Of a stretch of 64,000 nt of DNA, positions 2,031 through 42,560 are shown piece by piece (position 1 is the stretch's first letter; each line of letters begins with the position of its first letter). Below the pieces are notes generated by a model. That model was not told where the DNA came from. It made no database searches and worked only from the letters and a program-made list of their open reading frames with translations. The stretch spans positions 3,552-67,551 of the forward strand of contig JAAPAO010000127.1 of the NCBI GenBank assembly GCA_013115145.1. Direction: 5' to 3'. The DNA is from Perkinsus chesapeaki ATCC PRA-425. Its lineage: Eukaryota > Protista > Perkinsozoa. Both the position numbers and the translations under genes were made by a program.

Positions 2031-2038
2031 TTTACCGG

Positions 2039-6893: not shown

Positions 6894-9800
6894 TCACTTG
6901 ATGGTTAAAGGGCGATATCTCGACCCACTTCTTGAGCCGGGCAGTCTTGCTGGTGGATGTGGATGTGGATGATCCAAACTAACAGCAAAGTCATCGGCAT
7001 CATAACCGACAAGCTCTTTGCTGATAACATCCTCAGGTTTGATAAGCTGTTGTCTGTTGCTATTAAGTCTTTTTGATTGAGCTACCATCCACCATCGGCT
7101 CATTATGTGTTCTGGCACAAGCAATTTCTGTCGGATCTTCTCCTTCAATTCGGCACCGGTCGTTTGGCCCTAAAACAGCAATTCATATCTCTCTCAATCC
7201 CTCTCAACGTGCTTACCACAATAACCTTCACCAGAGTCGGGAATCCGAAATACATTCCACCTTGAGTGCCCCTGTCATAGTGTTGCACGTAAACCGTCAG
7301 AGGTTGCCCATCCTCGACCGGAGCGTGAGGCGTCACAATCTTAGCACGACAATCATCGTCGTCTCGTTCCAGCCGGATGTAACTATCAAATTATCGTCAC
7401 GCGCCACGAAATTATATCTTTATTTTACTCGAATAAAACATTTGTAAGCTTGTTCTGGGCAGTACTGTAACGTTGGAGCTCCTGGAAGATGTTGTCTTCT
7501 CCACCGTATACTTCCATAACCTTTACAGTAAAAATACCGAGGCCAGGAATCGAACCCGGGTGACTTACCTTCGATCTGTCGGTAACAACCATTCGGACAG
7601 GCACTGCCTTTGCATCACACTCGTCCTCGTGGATCACTCCGACCTTACGACAGTCGCTCACAAACGTCGGGTTCTCATCCACGAGGTGCTGCCACAGCTG
7701 ATTTACCGTCAAAGAAGGCTTTAAATCTGAATAATAAATGCGGGGTGCCGGGAACGAACCTATGCCTCACCACCCAGGTCATTTCCTGCTTGCTCGCTGT
7801 AACACTCTGTTGTCGGTACAACAGTCATTAAACCGTTGGCTACCTCTCTCACATGCTCATCGAAGAAACGAACCTGAGAAAATAACCGTAAATGAATGAG
7901 AAGTGTGGTATGACAACTTGAATATGAAATTTAAATGCGTTCTTGACATCACCATTGTGGTGATGATTAATGCGAAACCATTAATCATATAAAAATGGTT
8001 AATTGCACTCTATGTGGTGTGGAGTGTTTCCTTCCCACATACAGGATGCATAAATATTATATCACTATGGATTCGCGAATGATGGATCTCGCCGTCGGGG
8101 AGCTGTCGGCAATTAAGGTAGGACCCGTGAGAATATCTCCTAGAGATGACATTAAACACACTTACACATGCACATCCATTTTCATTCTCAACAAGCCTTT
8201 TCGGGACCCCGACTGCTTGCATCGTCCATTCGTGCGTTGGTGGCTGTCCCCAATGCAAAGATGAGAACTTCTCGTGTGACGCCGTCACATGGGCCGCCGA
8301 ATTGGCATCATCCAGTGCCGCCTGATGAGACCAGTCCACCCAGGTTCGATCCCCAGCGAGAGCACTTACGAAGAACCTTTGGTGGCTTCCAAGCAACGAA
8401 TGACCGGCTTCCGCACCGTTATTTAGGAATTCTTCTCGGGAAGCAGCTGGCGGTGTCCCTCCCGGAGTTAGTAAAATATCTTGCCTGAAGAGTATACAAC
8501 TACACCCTTCCCGCAACCATGGCCCGCTCTTTCGAACAGCTCCAGTTTCACAGGGTTGATTATAGGCGATCGAGTTTTGATCTTTCCGTAACCACAGCTG
8601 TCGGAAATTTCGGGAAAGTGTGTCGATTTTTTCGTATTAGGACCCAAATAAATTAAAACTAGTAATTAAATTGATATAAACTTGATATTGACTGATGAAA
8701 TTGATAACTTCATTAATATTTCTAATGATTTAGTGGAATTCAACATCTCAAGCACGCGATATTGTAAGAGTAGCAGTACTGGTTCGATGAGAATAGCTAT
8801 AATTATTAAAATGTCCTCGCCAGGGATCGAACCCGTGCCCCTACCCTTCATCAACATTGAACGTCTCTCGAATCGCTCTGGTCACTTGCGCCAAATTCCA
8901 TCTGAAATCCATCTCCAGAGTTTCAACCGGATGCGGTCGTCCATGTGACACAATCGGTGTCTCCCTAAAAACCGAAAATTTCCGGCGACATTTCTCGCTT
9001 TTTCTTACTGTATCGAAGCCGTTGACGGATGAGCGTTATTGCTATCATCGGTGCCACGGGAGAACGGCCGGTCCCAACTGTCATGCGAGCATCTGGCGAA
9101 ACAATGGAAATTTCTCGCCGAGCCAGCAGCCTTACATCCCATCAATGCTTGCTTCCTCCGCAGGGTCCACCATGTGAACAGTAACAACAACTTGATTAAT
9201 AAGACTAGCGAAGCAGTCTGCAGCTGTAAGTATCTTTTCAGAGCAGATAATGCACGGTTAACCTAAAGATTCCTCACCTTAAGTTTCGGGACCTCCGCAG
9301 AGCTCAAATCGGGCACGGCTGGGACAGGTGGATTCGGTCCGTCATACCATTGGCAAATCAAAACCGGTGCCACACCATTGCAAACGGTGACCTGACAACA
9401 TACCAAATCGATCAGCTGGGCGAGCGCTTTTTACAATCCAACTCTACCAGGTTAGTGAGCTCCTGAGGATCATCGAGTTTGACAGATGCAAGACCGGTGC
9501 GTCGCTCCGCCTCCTCGTAACACAAAATTGATCCACCGTCCTTTTCCGAGGGCACGCCTTCTGGCCAGAGCGAAAGAAACTGAATGCATATCCAAGGTTG
9601 AAGCAGGTAAGATACAAAATAACTCTACTTTGGCTAGAATTTCCTGATCAATCTCCTTCATATTCTGTAAGCCAGCAGCTTCCACCATCTCGCTGATCCT
9701 CGTTCCCAAGGCTGTCCGTAATGTCGGTGGCCCTCCAGCAGCCGTAACTCCTCCCAGGGAGATGTAATCGGCACCGAGCTCGACAACAGCGTGAGTTTTA

Positions 9801-12800
9801 GGGCAATAATATTTCATAATGACCAAAGTGCCTAATACCAAAAACGCAATACAAAAATCGCTTCGCTCCGCTAACCTACCCTGATTTCTCTCGATAATAT
9901 CTCCGAGTGGCTCAGGTTTGGCTTTTCCCAAATGCAGACGTCTGTGCACCGCCAACGTGTGGCTCGGTACCGCTAGTAACTAAAAATGACCGCTGCGCCA
10001 CGAAATTCATCCACCCGGTTCGTACTGTAATGTCTGCAACCTCCGGAGATCGATCCCTTCCTCGCTCGCTTGTTCGAGTTCCGATGGAAGTTTTCATTCT
10101 GAAAATTCAACCATTATGGGCCGGAAAAAATAGGAAAATTCCCGGAAAATTCCGGTCGTTTTTCCCCTCCCTGATTTATATAATATTTTCACATTGCAAA
10201 ATCGTTTTTCATATCATCAGGGGAGACAATGCCGTCCAATCTCGGACGAAAATCAAAACAATGGCCTCGAATTTAGTTTCTAAAATTATACCCCGCCAAA
10301 ATCTCAAAAAAATTCCCGTTATTTTTCCACGAAAAAGTCGTAAATTCGTTTTTTCCGGTGGTAATCTTACGCATCATTAAGCATCGAATCAAGTGTCCTT
10401 CCAGCACGAGATCGACTTCCGCGATGTAAATGATGATGTCCGTCGCTGCCCTGTCGGGTAGGTCCGTACATATTCCAATCTGCAGCGCCTGTGCTGTCCT
10501 CCTCAGCGCTCTCAGATACAACCATATCGCTCTTCAATTGGGACCAATCCATCTCAGTCATTCTGAAAGACGCAAGTTCGATTCCCGGCAGCGGAATTTT
10601 TAGGACTGTCCGTTACTTCTGACAATTTCGCGATAACTTGTCCAACAAAGATGCCAAGGTTAAACTAGAAAATTTCTCTCCAGAAACACAGCAAACACTT
10701 CCCTCCAAATTTTCCATCGACCAAATCCGCAATTTCAAGCAAATTTCCGAGCAGTTTTTCCCTGAAAATTTCCGAAATTTTGTCATCAAATACCCAAGCT
10801 CACCCATCAAGCCGTCTCCGTCTAAGATACGCCAAACCAATCTGTGTTGGGTCCAATTCGCTCGCCTTCTCATTAGTAGCCTTCAATGCATCAACAACCG
10901 ACTCGAAAATTTGCGGTAACTACCAAAACAAAATCAACCTCACCCGAAAAGATTCCCCCGCCTACCTCAGCAGTTCTGAGCATCCGTATAGTCGTTCCAG
11001 CGTTATCCGCTATTGCAGGAATACCAAAGCCCTGCAGTCAAGAGTGCAAACGTTTTAATGTGGGTAATTAATTCCGATTCTGAGATTTATTTCCCCAAGG
11101 TTACCTCTCCTCCCCTTAAATCCGCCGATGTCACTATCCTAACATTAACGTGCATGGCCGCTTCTTGAAGCTCTCGCTTCCGATCGTCAACTCTCTTAGA
11201 CTCGAGCTCTAAGCGATTCTTAACCTGACAAAATCGATCACGTGGTTATCAATTCAACCTATTTCGTATCTTACCGTTTCATAAGACGGATTCGTTAATA
11301 TCTTATCTGCCTCAGAAGCTTTCACATACACCAATAAATACCTAAAAATGCCCTCCCCCGGGTTCGAACCCACGACCTTCCCCTTACGCGCTATATATTC
11401 TTTGCCTCGTCACTTCCGTCGGAGATCTCAAACCTTTTGTAAGATAATCAGATGGAACCACATCGGTGCCGCCGAAATTATCCTCAACCTGAAACGAAAA
11501 ATGTAAAACGAAAAACGCTTCGCTCCGCGTGAACACTCACCGCCGCATACTCCGAAACCTTCGTAACAGAATCGTCATCAAACCGGAACCAATCAGTTCC
11601 TGAAATCGATCGATTGGGCGCGCGCTTGTAACATCACCGATAAACTCACCTTCTCCTTTTGGTCGAATAAAAGCATAATAGTGTCCCGAATTAACATCCC
11701 CGGAATGGACCTATTATGGTTATCCCCTGGTTATCCGAGGTTGAAGCGCGAATTCCAGGCTCAAAAAGATACGCCCGCGTAGAATCTTCACAGTGCGCAG
11801 CTTCCTCCACCTCCTTACCAGAACCGTGTGAAGAATATAGTCTCCTGTCCCGGGAAGCAAATTATCCAAATTCAAACGCGTTGGGAATTCAAACCGATCA
11901 TGCCTGAGCAAAATCGATCACGTGATCGATTACGAACCCCCTTACAATTTAACCATGTCCATCCTGGCGAAATCAAAATTGAATCTTTTCAGTTGAATAT
12001 TTAGAACCGGTGGGAACTTCGTAAACCGAATACCTTTCCTTGCCCTTTGCTTTCCATGACCTAGTAATCGAAAGGTCACGGGCTCAATTCCCAGTCGGGG
12101 CATTTTTATTACCTTCTGCTTCATAGGCATTCTCCCCCTCCAACATCTCCACTTGCGTAAAATCAAGTAGAGAATCTTGTAGAGTCTTCAGTCCAGCCAC
12201 ATTCAGCGATAAATCATAGAAAGGCTCAAGTCTGATAGGAGTAGAAAAAAAATCGAGTGAACCCGAAACCACAAAAGCTCGAGTGAGAATGAAGATGTCC
12301 AAGATTTTCCTGTCATTGTCGTGCATTCCCCAGCAAATATATTTGAAATTTCCCGAATTTTTCGGAAAAAATGTCCAATTTTCCCGAAAATTTCCGGTAA
12401 TTTTCCCTAGAACATCTCAGATTTCCTTAGTTTACTACCTTCTACTAGAGTAGCTTATATCCACACATTCAATAAAGTTCTCAAGCTCTCCTTCGAAGAG
12501 TTGCTGTATCGCACCGTCGACCGAAGTACCCTTCAACTTCTCCTCCAACTTGTCACAGAGGAGTCTCTCCAACTCTTGAGCCTAGAAACAGCAGAATCTT
12601 TAAATATAAAGAATCCCATAATCATCAGGTATAATAAAAGTCTATTATATCATATCATGAATAGTTACAGTGTATCTGTCAAACTACCAGTAAAACATCC
12701 CAGGTTCCATTCCCACGCAGAACACATCAAAATTATCATGTTCTCCTCCATCAACTGGCCGATCTATTTTAATGTTTATTTGGTTGCCCTAAGACGTGCT

Positions 12801-15800
12801 GTTCTACAACCTTCCTCACCAAGAACCCCACGAAAGACCTCCTTCACGTAGTAATACGTACCATACAGCAAGACTATTATTAATTTCATACCGCTCCTCT
12901 CTTACGTCATGTTGAGTAAATGCATCCATCGAATCCCATCCAAATGCTCTTATCAAATCCTTACAAGTCACCGGGACATCAGAAGTCTGCAAGTCCAAAA
13001 AGACCTGACCACAACAACTCTCAAGAGATGGATGATATAACGACCATCGATAATTTTCAACTGAGACACTGCATTGGATGCCTGGATCCCTCTACCGCCT
13101 GGTGCTCTCTCTGTGCGCTCGATCTTGGACTCTATATCAACACACTGTCCCCGATAGCGTCCAGCCTTGCGAACCAGAATCCAATCCGAAACTCGCTTAA
13201 TCCTCAAGTACAATCGAAACGACAATGAGGGAATTGCGCACCTACCGAACGCATGCTTCAACCTAAGATACTACCTTTTGCAGTGCAATCGGCAAGCTCA
13301 ATCGACCTCCAGATGGACTCATACATGCCAATGAATCTTCCTCTCCAATTTCCCCACCTTCCTCATCCTTAGCCAGACCTGAGACACCCCTCAAAAATCT
13401 TCACAGTGCGAAAGATTCCTACGTTCTCGCTCCGCTCTAGGATCAACCGAATAAACAATCTCCCGGAATCTTCCCAAATGATACAACGACTGTAGCAGTC
13501 CATTCAGGTAGCAAGTTGCCCCATGGTTTCGAAGACCAACGAAACTGACGACAGAAAAATCAAAAAAATTTTTTCCCTGCAAAGCTACCCTGTTCCTCCT
13601 CGCTCCCTATCAGTCCCGTTGCCCAGAACTGTCTCGGCTTGCCTAGCGTAAGCTGATGCTCTCAAAACCTAACAAAACAGCAAGTAAAATAGGATATGTT
13701 TTCCAAACTCGGTCGCCTTTTCACGATTATTTCTACAGATTTACTTTTCCTCCGGTTTAACATGTCTCATTCAATCACAAGTTCAATTATCTTTACTCTC
13801 GACAACCGTGTAGTGTTGGAGGCCTCTCCTGGCTCCCGTCTCGGGAGATCTTTATTATTTACCCCGAAAAACAACTTCCAAAAATTCCCACCAATTTTTA
13901 CCGAATAATATAACTTTCCCAATCTTACTTGGAAACACATATCTCCCCACTTTACGAAATTTCCCAAAAAATCGATAATTTTTCCCATGTTTTCCCCCCT
14001 ATTACCAAATTCCCTTCCTCATCCAACCAGCCTTCTTTAGGATCCAATACTTTATCGATTAACACCAGATCATGCCAACCACGATCAATCTCAGCCTTGC
14101 AGAAATTATGACTGTCAGATTTAACCTGATCATAAATCATTGAAATATTACAAAAACCTATCTCTTCAGTCACCAAGATGACCCATGCCTTGCTGCTCGC
14201 CCAGTGAAATATCTCACTTCAAAAACTAGACATTAGAGCCCCCCAGATTTCCTCCCTATTCTCACGAAGCCCAGCCTCAGGCGGCTTTGCTATGAACAAC
14301 CGCTGAGTGAATTCCAAAGTTGACCAAAGTCCACCAATACCAAACCGCTTCACCCATTTCGAGTCGTGACGGAATATACTACAAATTCACATTAATTTTT
14401 ATATTGCTTCATATGATTTATCGAATACCATATCCAACTGCATCACAAGCCCATCAGAGATTTCTTGCGCGCCACGAAACTCTACTTCCACTTACAACAG
14501 ATTTTCTGTAATCCTTCTGGTTGATAACAATAATCTGAAACTTAACACCAGCATAGACAAACCGAGGATCCATGCCTGACATCGAAAATTCACTGCGCCA
14601 CGAAATTAAAAAACCACTACTACCTTCCTCCCTCTCCTGGCATTCTACATAGGCAGCTAAATAGGTCGGCGCACGTGTGCGATTGCCGTGGGGGAAGACC
14701 AAAAGCTGAGGAGAAGTTGGTATGAGAATTCTCGTTAAAGCCACAGAGATTTGGATCCGAATACATCCGAAGCGGTGAGTCACATTCCCCTATTGAAGAG
14801 ATGTCCGACTTTTTAATGAGATTTCAAGTTGTATTTCTCCGGTATATGGTATTCTCCATTTACCATACGCATTGCAATATACTACATTTAATACGAAATG
14901 AACTATAAAAAACATATAGGATAAAATGTGCGGCACTTTCATCTACGAGCCTTCATAATTCCAAATAAGGTTCCACCTTGGAAGGGGTCCAGTTTCCTTA
15001 TAATTTTCCATTCCCGATGACTTGAACCATAACTTCATCAGAAGATCTAATGGGACAATTATACCATATAAAAGCACCCTCAAATTTCACAAAACGTGTA
15101 TTCATGAATCGCTTCGCTCCGCCTGAATATTGTTACCTTAAAAGTAAATGGTCCAGCTGTGAGGGAGGGTGAACGAATCTGCTCCATTGGTTGATATTTC
15201 GCAATATCCGCTATCTTAAACTCCAGCTCATTAGGGGCACATGGTGGAATTGTAGCTGATTAAACAAAAGAGCGGTATGAGCTGCACCAACACACACACC
15301 CGACCAAGCTAAAGCATATACTAAAGCACCGCTCTGTAGACGTGCCGAGCTTTCCAGCAATAAAAGGACGAATACGATATTCAAAAACCTTCGCTTAAAA
15401 ACGAGTCAATGCTGCTCCTCGGTGAATTAATTGAATATAGCATTTGGGCATATTTCCATTTGGCTCGATTTACGTGGCCCCGAGAATTATGATATATTAA
15501 TTATGACAACGAAGTAGTAGTAGAACAGAATAGGCACCAATTTTATCGACACAGCTACCAAAAATGCCATAATTATTAACTGCGAGAATTTTTAAGAAAT
15601 TTCCAGAAAGAAAGTTTTTATTCAATAAACCTCGGTGGTATTATCAAATAGTAGGACACTACTGTTTATCATTATCACTATATTATACCACTGTTATTTA
15701 TATTATTACTATAGAAGACAATATTGAATATCTCCCTTATATTATTACCAGCATTATGATCCACTTCTCCTCTTTGTTGTAGATCCTTCCGACTGCTACT

Positions 15801-15890: not shown

Positions 15891-15982
15891 ACTTCAAAAA
15901 TGATCACAACAACAACTACTGTCATACACTAATTTGCATAACAAAAATCGCTTCGCTCCGCTGTCACGCTAAATACACAAAC

Positions 15983-16009
15983 TAGCCCCTGCCGAGAATC
16001 GAACCCGGC
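15983..16009 (-). other. tRNA 3' fragment (intergenic/UTR)
   Basis: ccggg-TTCGATT-ctcgg-caggggc-t; T-stem pairs fully. Confidence 0.7.
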
Positions 16010-16123
16010 AGGCCAAGAAGATCTGATTTTTCCCAGGAAAATAGCGATACCAAATTTCCTCTAGATTCACCATAAATACAAACTTGTTTAAAAACTATTA
16101 CTGAGGGATTTGTTTGATTTAAT

Positions 16124-16148
16124 TGATCTCTCCAAGAATCGAACCCAT
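16124..16148 (-). other. tRNA 3' fragment (intergenic/UTR, degenerate)
   Basis: atggg-TTCGATT-cttgg-agagatc-a. Confidence 0.55.
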
Positions 16149-16216
16149 GCCCTCTCCCTCAACAAAATGCCAGTCACACACAGCAATGAAACGTAGTCGA
16201 GCACCCAAGTGCCACG

Positions 16217-19200
16217 CTAGCAAGGAACTGTTAAATTAAACCGCCTCTCCCGGGGATCGAACCTCCGCGGGTTTTCGTACACCGGGTTCTCGAGCAAGCG
16301 CCAGCTGCAACGCATCTCTATATATCCCCTTTGCGATCGATCGATACTCTCCATCATCTTGACTCAGAAAATTGTCCATCATTACCCCACAATTCACCTA
16401 TACAAAAAATGGTAAACATGAATCGCTTCGCTCCGCCTACTACCTCAAGTATCTTTAACTCGCCATTCGTTAGCTCGACAACGTCCACACTACAGAAGTC
16501 GATTCCTATTGCGTTTGTCGCGGCTACCGCAAGCGAAGCAATCTGATGAGATACTTCATAACCCGGACAACATTGACCAAATTCGACGTGCCAAAATGGA
16601 ACAAGAATGTAATATTACACTATAGCCAATAGTACACTTTATTATTCAGCCAAGATGGTGCGTTCATAGAAAATGAGTTGTTGGTGGTGGAAAAAGAATC
16701 TTTTAATGAATAATAAAGCAGTAAGATTGGGGTTCAAGATAGGAGCTAAAACACAATTTAAAATAGGGCCAAGATGCAGCCAATACTTTCCCGTCCTCGA
16801 CGGGCTCCCCTTGAATCCCATCACCTCGGAGCGTCACCCGTGAATTTCTGTAATTTCTCTAGCGCGCATAAAATGCAGCACCTTGAATGAATCCAGTCAG
16901 AAATGAGAGACCAGCTCCTCTCCTCCTCAGCCCTCCTTCTCCACATTACCCTTTTCCCCATATCAGAATCCATCTCAACTAACTTCGCCTTCGCACCTAG
17001 TCCCAAATTATGCTTCCACTGTAGTGGGATTATCTCATCCTTCTCAGGTACCCAGTCAGCATCTTCAACTGCAGCCAAGCAGCTCGCTATTCCCTGGAGA
17101 CAAATCAATGGCGAGCATTCAAATAAAGCGGCAACCCTAAACCCACTATCGAATAGGTTCCACTGTGGAAATATTCCCTTAATTAATTCGCCCAGCAAAT
17201 CATGCTCTGCAGGGTGGCGAAATGCAACCGAAACCCGACCCTCCAGTCGACGATCTGCCGTTCCTATAAGCTTTAAAGCTGTCAACAAATCTCCACGCTA
17301 CAAGTGCTCTTTAAACTACTCAATTCCATCAGTTACCTCTTGATCAAAAATTTCCACGGAAATTAGGAAATCGTTCACGCTCTTTGATGGTTTATGTCGC
17401 TTTGTGCCCAAAAAGGTTCTTAACATGCAGATACCACATAAACCTCCAAAAGCAAGCAGCAGCAGCAAGATGAAGTGCCACATTGTTCCCTATCTCTCCT
17501 ATAGCCCCCCCCTCCCTTTGTCCATTATTAACCTGTGCATTATGTTTATTAAGCCTCTGTGCACATAGTTCCGTTATTGTCTTGACTCCATCTCCCTTCA
17601 CCGATTGCCTCTGCTTCGAATACATTAATCTCGGTCTGCGATGGGTACATACAACCCTGTATTCATTCAATATATTCAGAAATGGTGAAACTGCCAACCC
17701 ATACCTGACAAAAAATTTCCGAAAATTTGCATAAAATCCAAAGAAAATTCCCGAAAATTTCCATTTCCCGATTCCCCAAATGACTTATTGTGGATGATAA
17801 CCTCAACAATAAGACATCATTATCAGAATTGAAGGGCCTAAGAAACCATATATTGACCATGGACCAGCGAGCCAGCTAGCGAAGATGCGTCCCTAGGTGA
17901 TGGAATAATATTTATAATGCGGAGACGTAGCGAGGATCTTTCTATGAAATAGGAAGAAAGGTCCCAAATGCTTTGCTTTTACCAGCATTTGATTCTCATC
18001 CATGAATCGCTTTTAAAGCATGTCTTCGCCTGAATTGGTGAAGGAAATTTTGAGGAAAAACAGTAAATTTTCCTTTGTTCACATTTGCGTGCTTAATTAC
18101 AGTCTTCTATGGGAATTGAACACAAGCTTAACTGACGAAAACTAACACCTATACCAGAACTGAGATTAGTGAATCAAAATCACCGATACAGAAAAATAGC
18201 CATCATCACGTTCGCAAACCTAACTAACTGAAAAGAGTTTTACCACTGCGATGTACGGAGGTAAAAATGATTGTTCACCTGCTCGCTCGAAAGAATTTTT
18301 TTAAGAAAGTGTTTTTTTTGCAATTTTTTCTGTCTTACTCTCGGCTGAATATAGTCAATATTGCCGCTTCCGCTTCTCTGACATTATGCGCCACCATAAC
18401 ATCAGCTCCACCAGTACCTAACCATCAGCTGGGATAGACGAGGCATTAAGATTAGGGAGGCAATTAGCCAAGTCATACCAACCACGAGAATTTCTAGAGT
18501 TATCCTCGTAAAATTTGAAACTGATATGACAGGGCTTAGGAATAAGATTCTTACTACCAATGATTATTAATCCTTATAAGCTTAAACGTATGGTTAATAT
18601 AGATTATATTAATACTTGACATAAGTACCAAGTTTTTATTAATACCACATTTCCGCCAAATCCTCTCTTCTATATTACCTTTCAATGGCTTTAACACTAA
18701 TGATTCCGACCCTTCCTTTTTCCAATATTTCAATACCTCCTCAACTGCACTTTGACCTTTAGGGATGTAATCTTTGGCGACAGAGCAACATGGATTAAGA
18801 AAGACTGTATGCGGAACATTTGGAACCTAAACAAATTCTCACTGCGCCACAAAATTATTGATACAGCGAATGTGAATTAATGCATGGGTGTGAAATAGCC
18901 CGATTGCCATTGAGATGAAACATGACGAGGACTTAAACGCAGAAGACTGGATGAGTACGCTACGACTGCATCACCCACACTCCAGGACGTCGAAAAAATA
19001 TATCTTTCCTCAAACAATACAAGCTCAATGTTCTAAAACCTACTCCATGTACTACCATTATCAGAACAAGGGTATGATACATATTACGGCAGGCATGGTA
19101 ATGGTCAGGCATTATTAGCTATCAGAAAAATGCGACAGAGCTACCTGTCCTGTACAGCAAATAATGCCTCCCACTGGACACAATCACCTCCGACATATCG

Positions 19201-19900: not shown

Positions 19901-19953
19901 CTAAAAGATAAAAAAACAAATACCGTACCCGTGGTTCGAACCCGAGTCTTCAC
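19901..19953 (-). other. Probable 53-nt intron containing a tRNA 3' fragment (sense)
   Basis: GTGAAG..tcggg-TTCGAAC-cacgg-gtacggt-a-tttgttttttt..TTAG; the host exons are not resolved. Confidence 0.6.
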
Positions 19954-20274
19954 CACGACGGAATCCCGAGCAAGTACATCCTCAAGCGTCTTTTCATATG
20001 CTCGCCTGTTCGCTCGATTTCCTGCATTTCAGATTCTCAAGGAAGTCGCGCGATTCCTAAGGACGCTTGCTCGTACTCTTAACCTGCGTCTCATTCTTCT
20101 GTTTTGGGTTCACTTTGCAGCTCGAGTTTTAGATCAACCCGTCTGAAAATTAGGGTTTCTGTGCTGCAATTAGATATTTAGTTAGTTTTAGAGCTAATGA
20201 TTAGTTTTGGTAAAGAACAATACCCCATTTTCATCGTTGTATTATTGCTGTCCCAACCGCAACAAGCTAGCTCG

Positions 20275-24078: not shown

Positions 24079-24109
24079 ACGTGGGTTCGACTCCCACAGG
24101 CCGCATTTT
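24079..24109 (+). other. tRNA 3' fragment with perfect T-arm (Leu-like)
   Basis: ac-gtggg-TTCGACT-cccac-aggccgc-a-tttt; no matching 5' acceptor strand upstream. Confidence 0.8.
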
Positions 24110-26007
24110 CCGTCAAGTAATGTTTTTGCGCTTCCACTCGACACACGGGGTAGCTTTCAAAAAATTACAAAAAATAATTTTCTTGGCATCCCCAGAGGGA
24201 GGGGAGTTTTTTCGTATACAGGTCATCAGCTAGTTCGCTCTGGTTAACGGGAAATAACTCGTACGCACGCACGCACGGCGAAATGATCCATTTCCAGATA
24301 ATAAGCCCCGCTCGCTTCGCTCGCTCCGCAATTGTAATGTATGACATGTTCCAATCACAAGGCATCAACTTCGAATAGGCCTGGTTGTCCAAACCCTGGC
24401 GGCTAGGGACCCGAAGTTCGGGACCCGAGCGTGTGAAATGTGTAGGTGCATCTAGGGTCGTTCAATAGACCGATCTTCAAATTCAGGATCAATTCCAGAA
24501 CTGCATTTTACATGGCAAATGCGATGTTGGAATCGATTCTGAATCCCAGAATTGGTTCAATAAACACTGGGACTGATACGCGGAGCTTCGTCCAGAATCG
24601 GGACAGCCGGATAATATGAAGTCGAAACTGGCTGAACTATGGCACTGTCCGACAGTAACTGTCGGGTGTTAAATTGGGTAGACCCATTCAAAGAGTCGAG
24701 ATCAGCCGTCTTCAAGGCGCTACAACTATGACAGTTAACTTATTTAAGATCGACTATAGGCCCGGTCGATATAATAAACCAAACAGATGGATTATAGAAG
24801 GATCCAATTGCTTATACACTAGTATATACCTTACGAAGTATACAGCATTAGCTAGGCTTAGATATCATATGTAACACAATGGGGACAAGCTTTGTGTTAA
24901 GCTTATACTACACGACTGAACTCATCTATTGATAGTATCAATTTGATACCACTTGAGAGTTGAATTCTGTGGCGGGACCTTCAGGTCATTAACGCTTGAT
25001 ACTAAGATCCAGTCCGGAGCATGCGATCCAGACTGGACCAGTCCCACGACTGCCGTGGCACGACAAAAGAGTTTGGTGTAACTGCATTGGTTTACCAGTT
25101 CAGCTTGACCTTAGCGAAGTTCTGCCAAGGCCAATTCACGTCGTCTGCTTGATGCATGACATCTCATCAACTGAGTGCCGTGACGGTATATAGCCGACCG
25201 ATTATCGGATGATTCGAACAGTTCTAAGTCCGAATAGTTCGGATGAATCGAACGTATAATCTCAACCATTGTATATAACACAAGGAAAGCCATTGGACGG
25301 ATAACGTGGGACAAAGGAAAAAGCCTTAGCTGGCAACAATGATTGATTCTCTACAGTTCTGGAACACTCCAAGCAGTTATTGGACTGTTCGTGGGACCCA
25401 TTCAAGCACAGGGGTACTGACACCCCGAACTACCCACATATCACACCATTGGCAAATCAGTACAACGCAACACGTAGACAATTCAATACCGGAACAAAGA
25501 AGTCTGAACTCTGATGCTTGAAGTCCAATTACAGGACAATTTCAGACGCTCTCGACCGGAGCCTCATACAGAATGTCATAATTCATCATCAACAACAAAC
25601 TGGTTACGCCGTGGCACCAAAGCTTGAGACTTGAGATTCTATACGGAACTTTACTAACAAAAAGTCTGTTGCTTACATAATGGCGGCAGGACGGCAACAG
25701 TCGTGACTCAAGGTGACCTATCTTAGTCTAAGACTTGTACTCTAACTTCAGCACTGAACTTAGAGTATAAGTCTGTGATTGTCAGCATAATCCATATAAG
25801 TCACTGGAAATTACTGGTCTGCAATTATCACGACTGAAGAACTGGCATCACAGTGTGATGATTATACAATATAGAGCAGGCGGGAACTGTTCAAAAATGT
25901 GCTCAAGTAAAGAGTCTCAACACTGTTAGAGCAACAATGACTGCAAGTAGCCAGCGTTGCGCAAGGCATGCATGCATGCATGCCAGCTAAGCTAAGCTGG
26001 CCCAGCT

Positions 26008-31984: not shown

Positions 31985-32225
31985 GAATGAAGGGTATACA
32001 AACCTAGTGAGATTGCTCTGAACAAGTCTCATCGATTGAGTCTATCTACACCGGTAACGCCCAATAGCGAATGGTCAATTACTTGCTTTTGCAGCAACTG
32101 TACGTATACATGTCACGGTCATTTTGCACGGGCTGTGAAGAAGCACCAATCGAAGGGGCCTTGTTTGGTAGAACTCCTGACACTCCAGCTGTTACTCGAG
32201 TACAGCTCATTCGAGGACGTTTGTT

Positions 32226-34864: not shown

Positions 34865-35535
34865 AGAAGGTTTTGGACCAGAAGGATGCGCTTATAAGTT
34901 AGAATTACGAGATTGGTCCTATATGGCTTCTAAGCGACTCTCAGTAGAATGCGTCGGTTCTGCGCGCGCTAAAAACTTCGCGCGCCAAGATATCAATTGT
35001 TAGTCATGAAACGGTTGATAGTTTCAGTGTCACGTTTTTTATTCTTGTTATAGTACTCATGTTTAAAATTTCACTCTTTAACACTCAATATTGAGTGACA
35101 AATCGATAAGAAACGAAATATTCTATTTCATTGCGTGGTACATCACCTCCATTCGTGGCTAGCAATGACTGCAATGTAGGAGCAGCTCCCCACCACCTTA
35201 AGACTGCCCACCGCCAAATGGGAAACGTGGTTGCTGTAGTAGCCTTATTCAGCGGGATGCCTACGAGAGCGTCCCGAGCAATTTTGCAGCACTCCCGGAC
35301 CGTCTTTCGCTTTAGGGGCCCTAGCCGACACTCTGGAGTAACTCCAATATATGATGGCACGTACAGCCCTACTGAGAGCATCCCAACAATGATATGCTTC
35401 CGCGTTGGCGTCCGTGATGCCATATTGACCAACTCAACCCGTCAGCCCTTCCGCGAAGCAATGGTTTATAATTGTGACAGTATAAACTTAAAGCGTTGCT
35501 ATCATTCAGATGGGCAATGCGGTCATATGAACTTT

Positions 35536-37051
35536 TCAACGGCGGTAAAATATATACCTAATACGAGATTCCTCTTGACCTGCCACAACACCCCCTCCCC
35601 TACATTAACATGAACATCGCCACTACAAAGAGGGCTAAATATATCATCGATCTTCCGCTACCACTATCCATCATATTTTGAAGCTTGGACATGGTCCCCT
35701 TTAACATCTGAAAGAGAGACTACTTTCAGTCATTGAACAAACGAATCAATGTTAAGGTATACAAGTAAAGAAACGAGATGATTCCTTAAATGAGGATGCA
35801 TGAGGCATTTCATGGTCGCTTTTTGATGGCCCTACTGAGACCCCTGCCGTCCAACCACACTAACATCTCCTCTCTGGGGTATTTCACTAATGTCGATATC
35901 CACGACTGCGCCAAAGGAAGCTTGTCGCAATTCCGTATTCCAGTTCCTCCATTCCGGTCTTCGCTATTTCTAACCTCCACCCATCTGCTTTCCCCCAACT
36001 CTATTACATCTCCAGCCTTGTCAAATTGTCCTCCCATGCCACTAAGTATATTATTAGATTCTCTCGCCTCCCGACCGATACCATGCGCCACTTCCTTCAC
36101 AGCTCGCACTCGAGCATCTAACTCATCAAGATACTCATCGTTTTGCTGCTCTAGAACTTGAGCGCTTGCCCCGTTGCCACCCTGACCGCCGTGAATCTCG
36201 CACTTTTAATAAAACAAAATGGCTCACTCGAGGTTGCATTTCACGACTGCTGGAATAACGGTTCCCGAAAAGTGCGGCGCGCTGGTCAACTTCGAACCTA
36301 AAACCAGGATACCCTCGATAATGCGACCCTCACCATATCCAGCTCCATCCTAACGATCCTGACTTCAATGCTTCGATCAGGGTGTCTTCTAGACTTGAAG
36401 TATAGTGTTTGTCGGGAAAGAAAGGAGGTCAAACAGTGTGAAGATACAACCCGGCAAAAAGGAGACCGAAAGGAAACGTCAAATTCATTTCTTCTAGGTA
36501 GCCAAGCATCTCATATCTCCATCACTCGAGCGTTACAATGAGAAATAATCATCTGTGATGTTTATTATATTACCAAGTTGGTAATACGAACAACATGACA
36601 ACAGCTATTCTGTTTAATATTATTGGCGGGTGTCCGTAACCGGGGTGAAGTAGATACTTGGAAACCAGTATTACACGAATGCTATAATAACTGCATTGAT
36701 AATAGTAAAATCATTCTACACTAAGCTCATGTGTAGTTCGTATTATTCATAATATCTATTATAACATAGTCGTGATCTCCTACTGTTGCCTTCTTGAGTT
36801 GCCTATAATTCCTATCAGCCCATTGTGATTCGATCTACCTGTGATTTATACGCTCCCTAACATCATAGGATCTACTTTGCGGCGGCGGTGGCTCTTGAGG
36901 TTGATACTGCCGATTCGATGCCCCCAATCCATATCGGTCACCGTAATTTGATGACATTAAAACTCAAAATCACCAACTACTACCTCTTGTTCATCTGGTC
37001 CCGAACATTATATCCGTCCGACCGACCGCCATTACGCTGGTACCCAGACAT
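35536..37051 (-). CDS. BET1: BET1-like Qc-SNARE, multi-exon
   Basis: QRAALF..LEQQNDEYLDELDARVRAVKEVAHGIGREARESNNILSGMGGQFDKAGD|MLKGTMSKLQNMMDSGSGRSMIYLALFVVAMFMLM|YIFYRR*; 5' exons (candidate ATG 37051) uncertain. Confidence 0.8.
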
Positions 37052-37150
37052 TGACCTCAAAAATATCTTTCCGTTTCATATCTCTCCCACCAAACTCAAC
37101 ACTGACTCACTGCGAACCTTTAAGTGAATAGCTCGTAAGGTAAACGTAGC

Positions 37151-39787
37151 TTAGGTGATTGGGGAGCGACAGAATCGATTAGCAGCATCCGCCATGGGGG
37201 AACTAATCCCCGACTCGGCGACTTTACAAATATTACTAGTGGACAGTAACAACAATTTCAAGCTGCATACAAACATACACTTATCCTTCTTACATAGCCT
37301 CAGCATTTCTTGCGCGCCCCAAATTGCTAATAACTGCTCTTAACTTTCGCAGTGGTGACACTATTGGACTTTGATCTTTCAAAGATACTCCCACCAGAGC
37401 TATCTGACCGTTATTAGCCTCGGACATCCCGACCCATTCAACCGATGATTCAAAATCACCATTAACGTTCACTCGAGCCTCTAAGGCACCTAAGACATGT
37501 CAAATATCAAATATAATACACACACGTGATCGCCTCCGTCCCCCCCCCCGACAGAGGCGTCAAATCTACATATTGCATTACTAAGGCGGTCCTGTATGAG
37601 ATACTCGGGAGCTATCTGCATAAAGCCAACTGCTATATCCTATCACGCTGAGTTCAAGTCTATGATGAGAAAATCGCCTCCCACTTAAGCAGCACCGAAA
37701 CGTCCATAAAGATACTTCTGCTCCTCCCCAGAATCTTTAACAAAAATTCTTACCAGTGCGCAAGTCAATTCGCCCTGCAGCGAAATCAGGATGCTCTTTC
37801 GTAGACGTCTCTTGCCAAAGCACATACAACTTCTCGGCATTTGATTCCTTATGGGCAATTCCAATCACTGGTCCCGGAGCTCTTAGAACTCTCTCAACAA
37901 CCAGCGATGCCGATGAACCATTCAACCTGAACAACAGCACACCCCTCGCCTTCCATGAGCAAAATAGATATGTTGCCGATTCGGCAATCGCCAATAAATA
38001 ATTCCAACCACGAGCGACATAGTCATTTGCCCCGAACAATATAGAATGATTTTCCCCTATCATTTCAGTTCAAGTTTGTAGAGAGCTCCGAAGCCTGTAT
38101 GTTCAACAACCGCTTACCGGTTACACGGATTAATTAACGCGGAAATGTTCTTCCAGCGCAAAAATGGTTGTAAATGCGAGTATACGACAACAGTCAGCAG
38201 CCAACATGTTTCTAGAGCAAAATACCGTGTATACATTCTGGGATCATCTCGCTCTCCTTTGAACCCCCCCCCCCCCCTGAATCGCTACAGAATCCATAGC
38301 ACACAAAAGCTGTCCCCTTAGTGTACATAATTAAGCACGTTACTCTATTATATACAACACCGGTCATCTGGAGATGGAGAATCGATGGGCAGCCGTAACT
38401 TCTTCAAAAATGAGAGTTTTGAGGTATTTTTCCCCTAGACAGTCCCGATATATATCTACACGGTAGGATAGGACAGTGGTTCCTCAATTCAATACAATAT
38501 CAATATATACTGCCATCATGGCAAAATTATCCCAATCCTTACCTAACAATTTGCAGCCATCCTGGGTGCTCCTTAGTAGCAACAACAGCCTGCCCACTGC
38601 CCATCATCTCCGCCTTGGTTACCGCACTCCCGGTGTTCAAGTGCAGAACTGCCTCCTCATCATCAACACTGTTCATGCACTTCTTCAGACCACCATCAGA
38701 GAGCACCGCATATGTGGTATTGCTGGACCTGATTAATATCGGTTGCTTCTGGTTCAGTGGGAAAAGGTTAACCAATCTCGAATTCCAAAGTTGAGTCTCC
38801 AAAGGCTATTTTTGTCTACTTGTAATTTTATTTTTCCACGTGAACCTTAGAAGCTGTCAGCTTACGGCTTCGCTATTACCCCGCACTACAAGGAAAACGG
38901 TATCGCGTGAACCAAAAGCACTGTGGAGGCGAGAGATTCAACTGAGGGTGAATTCCCCACTCAAGCAACTCATGAGTGTGGCCATGTTGAGGCATAATAT
39001 TATAGTATTTGCTCTATTAACGAAAGCACGTTCCCCCGATACTGATTATTTCTTCTAAATTGAACATTGAAGCCATTGGCCTAGAAGTAAGCCACACTTC
39101 ACGTGAACCTTCCATATCCCCACTTACCCAGCAACAGTGACGTCCACTATACTCATTCCCTTGGGCACAACACAATCTATGTCCCCTCTCAACTCGGGCG
39201 AATATATGCCGCCCTAAGTGGCACGAAAACAATAGACGTGATGGTAAATAATAAAGCATAGAAAGTTATGTATGATGATGAATGATGGACGAAACCATAC
39301 CCCCGCCGGCGAAAGAAGGCCTCATCAGGAAAATTGGAGCGCCAAGGTGTGAAGCTCTACTCGAAACCCATGTTCTCTAAACTCATAACGTCGACTATTT
39401 TTCTGAGAGGAATGACTTCTAATTGATATCAAGATGAAGCGTCCCTCAGACGCCTAAACGTTCCTGAGGCCTTTTACGTTTATATCCACATTTATTGTCT
39501 AATCCGTCCAGGACTCGACTTAGATTTTACCACAGTTTTCGACGTCGACAGACTTTCATCTCGACATCTCTCGCTCCCCATACCAAGCGGCCCACCTCGT
39601 TGCTGGTGAATACCAGGCCGAGCTCAGGAACGTTGCTAACACCCGATGGTCTGAAGAATGCTGGCCAGACGTTGTTATCCGGAGATGGCTCCGCGCTCGG
39701 GAAAAAGGCCGCTGAGAGCCTTCTGGTGAACTCGCCGTTACCGAAGGGATTGGAATCAGGCCAACCTGAAGCACGAGGAGGTGCCAT
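37151..39787 (-). CDS. Hypothetical multi-exon protein, possibly beta-propeller
   Basis: Series of open minus-strand segments (37290-37472, 37737-38063, 38539-38802, 39017-39259, 39527-39787) bounded by GT/AG; no family recognised. Confidence 0.45.
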
Positions 39788-40135
39788 GAGACATTCAATA
39801 GAGCGATGGCTGAATGCTGTAGAGATTATTATGACACTCTGATTCAGGCTTTTTCAAATAAAGCGACTTCACCCGCAATGGGATGAACGCCTGCGAGCAA
39901 AACAGGTCACATTTCACACAGCTCCAAACACGTCGAAAACAGATGTTCTACCACCAACTCCGCAAACTAACTTTTCCAACACATTTCAATGAGTAGTTAA
40001 TGGATTTACACTTGCTAACATTTCCCATCCTACCCCTCCTGATACCAATTCCACAATTTTCTAAAAACATATCTATTCGCTGCTTGATGACAAAACGGTC
40101 ATTGTAATTATTGTGCGCGCAAGAAACCATGGATC

Positions 40136-42560
40136 TCATATTTCCTAGTAAATTCAAAGAACAACAATGTACAGGCTCTCTCAAGTAGATATCCAAATTC
40201 TTTCGAGTGCGCATCGCCGCCGCCCTCCACCTACCCCAGCGGTATCCAGTAAGAACTGCGATACCATAGGCCAGTCCGAACAACCAACAGAAGCCCACTG
40301 CGACACATGCCTGGTTGAAACTGTGCCACGGTAACGTCTGAGTTTTCAAAGATGCTTTGTATGTCTCAGGTGCTTCGCCTAGAAAATAAAAATGCCCCCA
40401 CCGAGGATCGAACCTGCGTCCTCCTTACCATCAATGAACTCAGGGCTCTGCAGCGACCTGGCAACCTTCTTTGCCTCTTCCTTCTGCTGCTTTTCTGCAT
40501 CCTTCATCCACTCTGAACGAAATTAGCAGTTTTCTATATATATCAAAATCCTTCCAAAAATGAGCGTTAAAACATGCGCTCAACTTCATATTTTTTCTTA
40601 CCCGAAGGTGTGCCGGATTGCATCCGAGATATCTTCCTTTCAGGCTCCCCCCTATCATCCGTAATCAATCCCTCCTCCTTGCTCTTCTCGAAAGATACGC
40701 TCTTGCTCACTGAAAAATCTTCGCAGTGCGCAACCGTAAAGATTCTCATCCCTTACATTCTGATTTCTTCTTATCATCCTGCTCGGCTTCCTCTACACTC
40801 GACTTCGCGTCCCACAAAAATGTCTGCAACGACTTAACTTGTTCCTCGAATCCTTGAAGTACCACCGCAACCGCCTAAAATAGCACCACCGAGATCAACT
40901 TCATAAGTTTCCAACTTGATTTCTAAACAAATTCCCTTTTCAACTTTTTATCATACTACATGTCACCACTTACACACATCTCAACATTCAACCACAATTC
41001 ACACACCAAAAAGGGAGCTGAGAAAAGTTAAGTATGATTTGCCTAGAGTAGTATACATCTCAATCGATTGTGAGGCAGATCTGGTCCCAAACCCCAAACG
41101 AACTTGAAACCTCTGTTATATTTTCAGCGAGTGTCCACAGAATATAAACTTTTTTATCATCCAATTTGGTCAAACTTCCTTCAATACTTTCTCTCTACCA
41201 AAAAATAGATCGATAATTTACAAAAATTTCGCAAAAAAATATTTCCTAAGATTTCACGCAGAAGTTCGGAGATGATGCGAAACGGCGCATTCTTACATCG
41301 GGACCATCTTCAACTCTAATCTGGTCAGCTGATAAATCCTTAGGGACACTATAGCTAATCTCACTAGTGTGGACATTAAGGAAATATGGACGCTTCTTGT
41401 TAGTGGCATCATCTGTGAACTCTAATCTTACCCAGTGACCTGACCGGAAGAAATAATACCACATTTCCGCAAACTTTGCAGGCGACTCCATTATCAAAAG
41501 ATGCGATGATGCGGATTTATGGTACACATGATCTCAATATTACTTGAATCAATATCATAATTATACAGTAATGGAATTAATAATACCACATTTCCGCCAA
41601 TTCAATATGTCGCTTCACTTGAAAATAATGCTATATATTATTAATATGTCATTACATATGGGGCATGATTGTAGCGGACGAGAGTACATCTTATAGCAAT
41701 AAGATAACTAACGTTTCATAAAGATAATCAAATAAGAATCCTATTTTATTAAATAATACCGCATTTCCGCCAATTCGTAATTACCTGGAGACTCGTCCCC
41801 ACCATCATTATCATGTCTATTCGGAGCACGAACGACATCGCTGGCCTAAGCAGGAAAATAATAAAGACAAAAGACGACTGCGTTACGACTACCCCATTCA
41901 CAAGCCTCTTGCGTTCGCCGACAAGCCTAGCGAGCTCCTTTCGATCGGCATTGAAAGCCTTGCGCAACCTAAGATACACGAACTCTGCGCCTCGACCTGT
42001 TGCCTATCTTGCACGGTCAACCTCAAGATTCTCTTACTGCTTGAGACGTTTCTCCTGCTCAGGAGTGAACGAGGACTTCGTCGACATTTCCCATTCGCCC
42101 AACAGCCTCTGCAATGAATCCTCAGTGTTCCTGAAAACGAAAATCTTCACAGCGCGCATCCTCGATATAAAAATATCCACAGCGCGCATCTTGAATTTAG
42201 AAATCCTCGCATTGTGCGTCTTCTTATACAGAAATCTTCACAGTGCGTAAAGATACTTCCCCTTCATTACCTGCAAGCCTTCTCCAATCTCTCACACGCA
42301 TCAACAGCATCAGAAGCATGTTCCGCAGCGCTTTTCTAACACCAGAACTCTCCACGTCAAAAGCGCGCGCCCATCTAATCGATTTCACCTGCGTGCTGAA
42401 ATGCGACGTGTCAATGCCGCTTCGTTTGAGTTCTTCTTTGGTCTTCCTAAACGTATGGGCCTGTCTGATGACCGGAGCCGCTGGCACTGCTTTAGCGACT
42501 GGGGTTTCTTCCTTGATATCCTTGCCTAAATCTTCGCCGTCAGCCTCTGAAAAAAATGGG
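40136..42560 (-). CDS. Hypothetical coiled-coil protein with C-terminal TM, multi-exon (may continue the 42863-46116 gene)
   Basis: TQ|KSAAEHASDAVDACERLEKACR|NTEDSLQRLLGEW..YLRLRKAFNADRKELARLVGERKRL..CVAVGFCWLFGLAYGIAVL; both ends uncertain. Confidence 0.55.
40379..40428 (-). other. 50-nt intron containing a tRNA 3' fragment (sense)
   Basis: GTAAG-gaggac-gcagg-TTCGATC-ctcgg-tgggggc-a-ttttt..CTAG. Confidence 0.8.

Follow-up and report, generated by a model that had tools for sequence, protein, structure and literature searches.

The window analysed here, a stretch of 64,000 nucleotides from the Perkinsus chesapeaki genome, raises the question of why short pieces resembling the 3′ ends of tRNA genes lie again and again inside very small introns, and which part of them, if any, is still used. 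The preliminary description had listed 14 such sites, and a T-loop/B-box sequence like GGTTCGANNCC was found within one to two mismatches at all 14 of them. As a null, the whole window was resampled 200 times on both strands by a first-order Markov model which keeps the dinucleotide frequencies. Against this null the exact B box occurs 10 times (0.36 expected), the B box with at least four of five T-stem pairs 11 times (1.96 expected), and 10 sites (0.30 expected, null maximum 3) combine a B box of at most one mismatch with purine 73 and with a T-run whose start lies exactly 12 nt past the box. These counts bear out the list of sites. Two to three more sites were found, at 12703, 54521-54568 and possibly 57336-57386. 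The strict pattern GGTTCGANNCC-N10-R-TTTT has 524 matches genome-wide and its reversed control has 0; 26 of 30 sampled matches are fragments and not tRNA genes, with GT..AG context for most. No paper on tRNA-gene tails in tiny Perkinsus introns was found in the literature.

A covariance model built on 11 host tRNAs was run over the window and placed 10 listed sites within its top 12 matches; singly these are marginal and partial (E 0.04-5; 7-13 bits), the best being 12061 with 12.7 bits. Intact tRNA genes were not found in the window by ARAGORN (0), and no Rfam tRNA match was obtained at the gathering score or at E <= 10. The 5′ half with A box, the anticodon arm and the paired acceptor stem of a functional tRNA gene do not come together at any window site, and the T-stem is completely paired only at 7521, 15983 and 24079.

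The intron location was examined by cross-species alignment, which places seven listed sites (7521, 7727, 8322, 8797, 10563, 11342 and 12061) in introns of a USP7-like gene; with 12703 this gene carries eight relics. The orthologous GT..AG segments of P. olseni differ in length, by a non-multiple of 3 in four of six curated pairs, and the exons flanking the relic introns are 82% identical in protein. The spliced product aligns unbroken with human USP7 (E 2e-22); removal of the 11342 intron, for example, joins IYSA directly to YLLVYVK and leaves this alignment unbroken. The orthologous segments together with the human alignment confirm, at the level of sequence comparison, that the relic segments of this gene are spliceosomal introns. 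No RNA run was found to match the window, and two small runs with its species label gave no alignment to it. Ten sites had been proposed as intronic; seven are secured in this way, and three more (16228, 19901 and 40379) are probable introns by GT..AG ends or by an ab initio model alone, the latter calling 40379 under both penalty settings. The four remaining listed sites (4035, 15983, 16124 and 24079) have no intron assignment. It had also been proposed that all sites are bare 3′ fragments without a 5′ half, which holds for most and appears to fail for 4035, where a covariance-model match (3980-4065) includes acceptor pairing. This site is probably a whole, decayed tRNA pseudogene, and its counterpart is absent from P. 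olseni L082 and from Logan contig L083. The coordinates are given in Table 1.

Table 1. tRNA-derived relics and related features of the window (L082, P. olseni).
Feature	Position	Strand	Details
Decayed tRNA-like sequence, intergenic	3980..4070	+	B box 4044-4054; between TIR-like and NOT2-like genes
48-nt intron, sense relic	7521..7568	-	Exact B box 7546-7556, T-arm 5/5 pairs, acceptor CCTCGGT, A73, TTTTT
44-nt intron, sense relic	7727..7770	-	B box 7750-7760, 1 mismatch
48-nt intron, antisense relic	8322..8369	-	B box 8343-8353 on + strand
48-nt intron, sense relic	8797..8844	-	Exact B box 8823-8833, A73, TTTT; orthologue near L082 7417-7467
Antisense relic, 3′ end of a longer intron	10563..10608	-	B box 10575-10585 (+ strand); 5′ limit uncertain, up to 10803
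46-nt intron, sense relic	11342..11387	-	AAGGTC (variable loop) to T-run; exact B box 11360-11370
52-nt intron, antisense tRNA 3′ half	12061..12112	-	Anticodon loop to T-run; orthologue L082 11343-11395
Intron with decayed antisense relic	12582..12716	-	B-box-like 12703-12713 on + strand; not in preliminary list
Relic	15975..16012	-	T-stem 5/5, B box 1 mismatch, without T-run; between ATP-grasp-like and USP7-like genes
Relic	16124..16171	-	B box 16135-16145, 1 mismatch, A73, without T-run
Candidate 53-nt intron, sense relic	16228..16280	-	GTACGA...AACAG; exact B box 16253-16263; GT..AG ends only
Candidate 56-nt intron, sense relic	19901..19956	-	B box 19932-19942, A73, long T-run; contig L085 does not extend to it
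Relic, best-kept T-arm of the window	24079..24115	+	T-stem 5/5; B box 24084-24094 without mismatch; A73, TTTT; outside gene models
Probable 50-nt intron, sense relic	40379..40428	-	B box 40404-40414, 1 mismatch, A73, TTTTT
Candidate 48-nt intron, antisense relic	54521..54568	-	GTAGGA...TTCAG; exact B box 54545-54555 (+ strand); not in preliminary list
Possible 51-nt intron, weak	57336..57386	-	Exact B box 57358-57368; few other tRNA features

The ancestry of the pieces can be read from their layout. Between the B box and the T-run of the relics there are exactly 11 nt, the last of which is A73; CCA is absent from all listed sites, and A73 followed by a T-run is present in most. In the 26 sampled fragments position 72 is always a pyrimidine, C48 is kept in 23 and G46 in 19, and the full AGGTC variable loop in seven. 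Several window relics have an AGGTC remnant upstream, 12061 extends back to the anticodon loop, and decayed, nearly complete tRNAs occur elsewhere in the genome (L061, L104). The 5′ limit of tRNA similarity varies from tRNA position 32 to 53 and the 3′ end is always retained. The missing CCA, the 11-nt spacing to A73, the T-run and the AGGTC remnants support the view, already taken in the preliminary description, that tRNA genes and not mature tRNA supplied the pieces, which are 3′ ends with the Pol III terminator attached.

The differing acceptor strands had been taken as a sign of many source tRNA species, a conclusion which is not supported by the P. olseni orthologues, as these differ at a neutral rate in the acceptor (24/56 identical, against 0.357 at fourfold sites). 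Since the acceptor strands drift neutrally, their present differences are uninformative on the source tRNAs. Positions 63-73 were matched to an incomplete host set of 16 isoacceptors, and only one of the 14 fragments, 10563, gave a specific match (10/11 to tRNA-Asp-GTC); on the same set the summed best-match score is 101 against 80.6 for shuffled sequences, mainly via generic positions. By this match 10563 is the sole relic provisionally assignable to a host tRNA type, Asp/Glu.

The splice signals of these introns are built in part from tRNA parts. In sense copies the T-run stands where the pyrimidine tract before the AG would be, in agreement with the double role proposed for it earlier, while antisense copies gain their 5′ splice site, GTAAAA, from the T-run together with the AC behind it. 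The B-box GTTCGA or GTACGA serves as donor at P. olseni L082 6722 and 9946 and at 10025 of the window, and the P. olseni orthologue of the 7521 intron (L082 6676-6722) begins with the GTTCGA of the B box itself. The 5′ splice site GTAAGT of the 8322 intron abuts relic position 73 directly, and the 12061 intron takes its donor GTAAT from the sequence just past the T-run and its 3′ AG from anticodon-loop positions 32-33. The conservation of Y72-A73 and the T-run may reflect branch-point or pyrimidine-tract needs and not Pol III.

Age and conservation were studied for one gene, the USP7-like gene, against one other species, P. olseni. All eight relics lie at orthologous intron positions there, and no intron of this gene is confined to one of the two species. 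Fourfold-degenerate sites are 36% identical (0.357), which means saturation. As all eight are common to both species despite this saturation, the relics are ancient and not fresh captures, and recent capture or intron gain is not supported. Of the single orthologues, that of 7727 carries a B box free of mismatches and resembles it in the acceptor, that of 8322 is also antisense (L082 7251-7301), that of 10563 keeps 6/7 of the acceptor, and that of the decayed 12703 relic (L082 11942-12046) retains an exact B box. P. olseni has four further intronic relics that are missing from the window, where the same introns exist free of relics.

The eight relics are kept unevenly along their length. The fixed positions of the B box are identical at 62/72 (86%) against 24/56 (43%) for acceptor positions 66-72 (Fisher p = 4e-7), and under a null that takes the best of 30 anchor offsets none of 2000 trials exceeded 48 matches. 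Just 4-10 nt from the B box, the acceptor bases change at the neutral rate, and the B box is equally conserved in the antisense copies (8322, 10563, 12061 and 12703). The orthologous comparison shows in this way that the B box is under selective conservation, and its persistence in both species, although their neutral DNA is scrambled, makes it probable that it is still in use. The USP7-like introns are overall more conserved (0.60) than fourfold sites and carry other conserved cassettes, so the B box may be one among several intronic elements. RNA structure is not kept: pairing in the outer T-stem is 0.42-0.50, with 0.35-0.38 in a slid control, and has decayed to chance level. This conservation of the B box is the main point which was absent from the preliminary description.

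We favor the reading, with a probability of about 0.6, that 3′ ends of tRNA genes have survived here as ancient relics in which the B box is selected as DNA, most plausibly as a predicted docking site for TFIIIC. The relics run from the variable loop through the T-arm, the 3′ acceptor strand and the discriminator to the Pol III terminator; they lie in either orientation, mostly within the 44-56-nt spliceosomal introns of this Perkinsus genome. The tRNA itself is dead, with its 5′ half lost, the outer T-stem pairs decayed and the acceptor strand drifting, and the persisting parts are the 11-nt B box and, at a fixed distance, Y72-A73 and the T-run, which with the bases beside it doubles as a splicing signal. 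The constraint is most likely on DNA, as the B box is conserved whichever way the relic faces in its host gene. TFIIIC would then be its most plausible reader, by analogy with the extra-TFIIIC (ETC) sites of yeasts, and from this we infer a possible downstream role such as a boundary, a chromatin element or a polymerase roadblock. Canonical tRNA genes with B boxes are present in the genome, as is a homologue of the TFIIIC subunit Tau95 (44.8 bits, above the Pfam cut-off). An exon-by-exon search gave no match to PF04182, the family of the subunit that binds the B block, which is a weak negative in so intron-rich a genome. A wider version is tentatively put forward, in which several hundred or more intronic B-box sites may form a network read on DNA by TFIIIC or another factor and concentrated in certain genes, and tRNA-gene 3′ ends may also be a major source of splice signals for tiny introns. 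The donor would come from the T-loop GTTCGA or the variable-loop AG/GT, and the T-run would give the pyrimidine tract or, reversed, the donor.

Other explanations of the relics are also to be considered. Many tRNA genes or pre-tRNAs may have been captured into coding sequence by break repair or retroposition, each creating a new intron of about 50 nt, as the preliminary description supposed. Such a fragment would be pre-adapted through a GT of donor type, in its variable loop or its T-loop, and through the T-run before an AG. The splice sites are demonstrably tRNA-derived (GTTCGA and GTACGA donors, T-run tract, antisense GTAAAA), but a 35-nt relic in a 46-nt intron must touch both splice sites, so adjacency proves little. 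The constant 3′ end with variable 5′ extent (32-53) is as expected of 5′-truncated copies, and the P. olseni-only relics speak for capture as such; these relics, however, lie in introns which the window also has, which fits insertion into existing introns, or loss, better than intron creation. Drift accounts for the diversity of acceptors, a specific host match exists for 1 of 14 fragments, and no species-specific intron was seen in the compared gene, where the eight relic introns are common across saturated divergence. We consider this explanation unlikely. A single mobile family of SINE, MITE or introner type with a tRNA-like core and diverged copies would account for the hundreds of genome-wide copies in both orientations inside genes, yet nothing is shared outside the tRNA-like module (no consensus at positions 38-43 upstream and 78-85 downstream). 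Terminal repeats or duplicated target sites were not seen around the relics, and the search of two fragments with up to 3 mismatches gave mostly scattered single loci and real tRNA genes, with no young, near-identical copies. The positions are orthologous in P. olseni, and such a family is most improbable.

The B box could also act at the RNA level, where a T-arm-like hairpin or GGUUCGA would aid the definition or splicing of short introns, or where the excised intron would give a tRNA-fragment-like small RNA. Sense copies are commoner, about 17 of the 26 sampled fragments have an AG within 12 nt past the T-run (judged by eye in the strict sample), and A73, 7-20 nt upstream of the 3′ splice site, is at a plausible branch-point distance. 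The chance-level pairing of the outer T-stem, the lack of compensatory changes in the orthologous pairs and the equal keeping of the B box in antisense copies, whose RNA sequence is different, make this quite improbable. It is very improbable that the relics are neutral and functionless and that the apparent conservation comes from ascertainment, a low mutation rate or tRNA-gene conversion. The window sites were indeed selected for having a B box, but P. olseni keeps the motif though it was unused in site selection, and the anchor-choice null stays below the observed count. The nearby acceptor bases evolve neutrally. Gene conversion could draw on hundreds of tRNA gene copies in the genome (PMC3706591). 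An 11-nt tract is in general too short for gene conversion.

Among known systems, the ETC sites of yeast are occupied by TFIIIC but not by Pol III and serve as boundaries or tethers (PMC3395662). Like these chromosome-organising clamps of budding and fission yeast, the Perkinsus sites are lone, species-conserved B boxes that lack an A box and the rest of a Pol III gene; ETC sites, however, are few and intergenic, whereas the Perkinsus sites number hundreds, derive from tRNA tails with a terminator and lie in tiny introns, with TFIIIC binding only predicted. The intronic tRNA pseudogenes and tRNA-derived SINEs of animals and plants share the internal Pol III box and both orientations within genes, but in SINEs it is the 5′ part of the tRNA, with A and B boxes, that is retained ahead of a body and a tail, and the copies form families of similar sequence, while the relics are 3′ ends with the native terminator, have no body or family consensus, and make up almost the whole intron. 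The introners of Micromonas, Aureococcus, fungi and dinoflagellates are likewise short, fill whole introns in both orientations and supply splice sites with their ends; in contrast to the ancient, orthologous relics, alike only in the tRNA core, they are recent, near-identical and mobile, and their presence varies. In the same genus, Dada DNA transposons target the tRNA genes of P. marinus, which are unusually numerous and struck by mobile elements, each family inserting at one fixed point of the D-arm region of the tRNA and leaving a target-site duplication (PMC3706591). Dada inserts into intact tRNA genes, whereas the relics lie in introns of protein genes; their 5′ limits vary from 32 to 53 and no duplicated 6-mer, transposon end or other transposon sequence adjoins them, and the suggestion of Dada-type footprints is not supported.

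If TFIIIC binds these sites, no other known set of TFIIIC sites independent of Pol III would come near that of Perkinsus in density, and the set would lie within Pol II genes. Since culture and transfection are possible for P. marinus, this would offer a tractable system for their roles in boundaries, chromosome folding and polymerase interference. The relics show a promoter element and splice signals on one piece of DNA, and they give a datable record of the building and reshaping of tiny introns in an alveolate lineage near dinoflagellates and apicomplexans. They also explain the thousands of partial candidates which appear in tRNA scans of Perkinsus genomes; the scan of the present genome gave 4092 first-look candidates.

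The relics considered here are 3′-end pieces of tRNA genes (T-arm with B box, 3′ acceptor strand, position 73 and Pol III T-run), most of them lying in tiny introns. The T-loop or B-box-like motif was present at all fourteen sites (4035 to 40379) put forward by the preliminary description. Expected counts for the window were taken from 200 Markov-resampled sequences; the exact GGTTCGANNCC occurred 10 times against 0.36, and the combination of a B box (one mismatch at most) with a purine and T-run exactly 11 nt further on occurred 10 times against 0.30 (maximum 3). A covariance model built from 11 host tRNAs placed 10 of the listed sites within its 12 best window matches, every single match being marginal, and a fully paired T-stem was found at three listed sites only. 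No intact tRNA gene was detected in the window by ARAGORN or Rfam. For site 4035, which aligns across the entire model with some acceptor pairing, decayed full-length pseudogene is the more fitting term.

The relics are tRNA-gene tails. CCA is absent, and A73 and the T-run follow the B box at an exact 11-nt spacing; both features bear out the proposed source in tRNA genes or pre-tRNA rather than mature tRNA. The AGGTC variable loop is retained in several copies, and relic 12061 extends back to the anticodon loop, where the remnant reads AGT in the window and AAC in P. olseni. Among 26 fragments sampled genome-wide, C48 is present in 23, G46 in 19 and a pyrimidine at position 72 in all; G1 is near-universal in tRNAs, and a pyrimidine is expected opposite it at position 72. 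Decayed near-complete tRNAs are found elsewhere in the genome (L061, L104). Beyond the stretch from position 44 to the T-run the 26 fragments have no sequence in common, and so, as the preliminary description held, the copies are not reducible to a single SINE consensus. The differing acceptor strands had been read as a sign of many source tRNA species; orthologous copies differ there too, so the differences reflect drift and are no evidence for many sources. When positions 63-73 were compared with 22 distinct host tRNA 3′ ends, site 10563 matched tRNA-Asp-GTC at 10/11 positions and no other site was singled out.

The window is part of contig C299 in the 41.7-Mb host assembly, in which the strict pattern GGTTCGANNCC-N10-R-TTTT occurs 524 times (reversed control, 0). 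Fragments made up 26 and tRNA genes 4 of the 30 strict-pattern sites listed first, and most sampled fragments either have a GT on one side and an AG close by on the other, or finish with T-run + AC, which is GTAAAA on the other strand.

Very short GT..AG introns are numerous in the window genes, and Perkinsus olseni is the nearest named relative of their proteins. Seven listed sites and 12703 belong to the USP7-like deubiquitinase gene. Its comparison with P. olseni, by global alignment of the orthologues and a gene model guided by conservation, yielded 82% protein identity across 1194 codons. Each segment carrying a relic begins with GT and ends with AG in the window as well as in P. olseni. 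Segment length differs between the two, and in four of six curated pairs the difference is not a multiple of 3. Among the predicted relic introns of this gene are 7521-7568, 7727-7770, 8322-8369, 8797-8844 and 12061-12112. Removal of four predicted introns, including the relic intron 11342-11387, gives a peptide aligning unbroken to human USP7 (E 2e-22), with the junction ...IYSA/YLLVYVK opposite human ...TNAYMLVYIRES. Comparative sequence analysis thus confirmed these eight relics in predicted introns of the gene. Sites 40379 (at 40379-40428), 16228 and 19901 are probably intronic as well, on weaker grounds; self-trained ab initio gene models outside the USP7-like gene, being too weak or too permissive, give soft support only. 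The earlier figure of ten sites in introns is reasonable, since seven were confirmed by comparison and three are probable; the tally leaves out 4035, 15983, 16124 and 24079. The clustering of relics is strong, with eight in the roughly 7-kb USP7-like gene (7.5-12.7 kb, spacing 0.2-1.7 kb) and 12-13 in its P. olseni orthologue; no more than one relic was present in other intron-rich window genes, such as those at 40-46 kb.

Coordinates of the relics and other features (window positions unless a contig is named)
Feature	Location	Strand	Remark
Two tandem paralogous genes	558-3984	+	~500 aa each, 46% identical to each other
Z221/R21b C/D-box snoRNA-like match	2315-2406	-	23.3 bits, gathering score 44
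Decayed tRNA pseudogene	4035		intergenic spacer, adjoins NOT2-like gene
USP7-like gene	~6.9-14.2 kb	-	
Additional relic	12703		decayed
Additional relic	54521-54568		
Additional relic	57336-57386		possible
Introns with the B box as 5′ splice site	9980-10025; L082 6676-6722, 9879-9946		
Cassette GCGGAGCGAAGCG	16436, 15961, 15122, 11528, 9871	-	usually followed by T-run
Orthologous introns with identical GCGGAGCGAAGCG cassette	11489-11540; L082 ~10764-10825		
Cassettes TTTCGTGGCGC and (CACG)TGATCGATTT	14605, 14479, 10005, 7411; 11920, 11240, 9414	-	
Partial U6 snRNA gene copy	L119 (G000:C633:1-2581), 1204-1255		3′ half and terminator
Region colinear with L082	558-14128		P. olseni, GCA_013115115.1

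Each of the eight USP7-like relics (8/8) is matched by a P. olseni relic of like orientation at the orthologous position; P. olseni has four additional relics in introns present but relic-free in the window. Fourfold-degenerate sites are only 35.7% identical between the species and are thus saturated. The nine fixed B-box positions are identical in 62/72 comparisons of the relic pairs (0.86) and acceptor positions 66-72 in 24/56 (0.43); the acceptor identity is indistinguishable from the neutral rate (p = 0.27) and B box and acceptor differ significantly in identity (Fisher p = 4e-7). A null accounting for anchor choice gave at most 48 matches in 2000 trials, against 62 observed. A73 and the T-run are likewise retained, C56 is invariant, and the B box is kept as well in the antisense copies (8322, 10563, 12061, 12703) as in sense copies. 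We therefore regard these elements as ancient remnants of tRNA tails that lie in introns and whose B box is under selection, with a probability of about 0.85.

The suggestion that the T-run doubles as polypyrimidine tract holds, and tRNA parts appear from their sequence to act as splice signals. In antisense copies the reversed T-run + AC would supply the donor GTAAAA, and the predicted donor of two P. olseni introns is GTTCGA or GTACGA from the B box itself (contig L082, 6722 and 9946), with the same GTACGAACC donor at window 10025. The GTACGA form resembles a T-loop in which mutation has improved the donor. The 5′ splice sites formed by the B box read AAG/GTTCGAATCC and GAG/GTACGAACCCC.

The acceptor bases, only a few nucleotides from the B box, serve as an internal control and speak against pure neutrality. 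A role of the relic at the RNA level is likewise not favoured: outer T-stem pairing is at chance genome-wide (0.42-0.50 vs 0.35-0.38), no compensatory changes were found between orthologues, and conservation does not depend on orientation. If the copies formed one mobile family, a consensus would be predicted; none is present, and the positions are orthologous in P. olseni, so this reading also loses ground. Capture and intron gain had been suggested as recent events, and no sign of either was seen between the two species; creation of the introns by tRNA-fragment capture in the distant past is possible, although nothing in the present analysis supports it. Dada transposons cut tRNA genes at fixed sites (PMC3706591), whereas the relics have no uniform 5′ limit and so do not fit the Dada-type footprints proposed earlier.

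On the preferred reading the relic is dead as a tRNA, but its B box is under selection whatever its orientation. Conservation in either orientation points to recognition of double-stranded DNA. TFIIIC binds Pol III promoters with high affinity at the B box, and in yeast position C56 is critical for TFIIIC binding. Canonical tRNA genes are present in the genome, as is a homologue of the TFIIIC subunit Tau95, located at G000:C3278:2559-2660; the B-block subunit domain PF04182 was not found, a negative of little information value because this intron-rich genome was searched exon by exon. TFIIIC is a tentative candidate for the reader of the B box, at somewhat below even odds, and the relics would then be docking sites embedded in introns, similar to the extra-TFIIIC (ETC) sites of yeasts. 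ETC sites, tRNA-derived SINEs and introners are the closest known systems, and the relics differ from each. A full-text literature search returned no paper describing spliceosomal introns that derive from tRNA or carry a B box, whether in Perkinsus or in other organisms.

For the neighbouring regions, the 4035 element is absent from Logan contigs L083 and L084, both of which end ahead of the USP7-like gene, and the P. olseni NOT2-like protein admits more than 200 splice solutions. Exon 16824-17297, searched against the whole library, matched one 3-kb contig (L085) that ends before reaching site 19901; exon ORF 9470-9955 and single-exon ORF 49006-49764 found no relatives. The tandem paralogues have no Pfam matches, with relatives in P. 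olseni and in Logan contigs from SRR12548988. A permissive-threshold Rfam search of the window gave two matches only, both chance-level; the weak snoRNA-like match, opposite the 2344-3984 ORF region, is probably due to chance.

Near-identical genes for tRNA-Arg-TCT, Gln-TTG and other tRNAs form dense arrays on host contigs C2943, C2831, C2406 and C1502 (loci L005-L019, L040), many without a T-run immediately 3′. These arrays may be linked to the Dada transposons and the large number of tRNA gene copies reported for P. marinus (PMC3706591).

Other conserved cassettes recur in short introns. The GCGGAGCGAAGCG cassette includes the GCGAAGC mini-hairpin motif; its reading with the T-run as a U6 snRNA 3′ end, which would have spoken for retroposed Pol III transcripts, was rejected as the host U6 end differs. 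The partial U6 copy has the same downstream flank as the full gene on C2699, which suggests duplication at the DNA level and not retrocopying. USP7-like gene introns average 60% identity between species, and the cassettes TTTCGTGGCGC and (CACG)TGATCGATTT are conserved base for base, at the sites open to comparison, in orthologous P. olseni introns despite the saturated fourfold sites.
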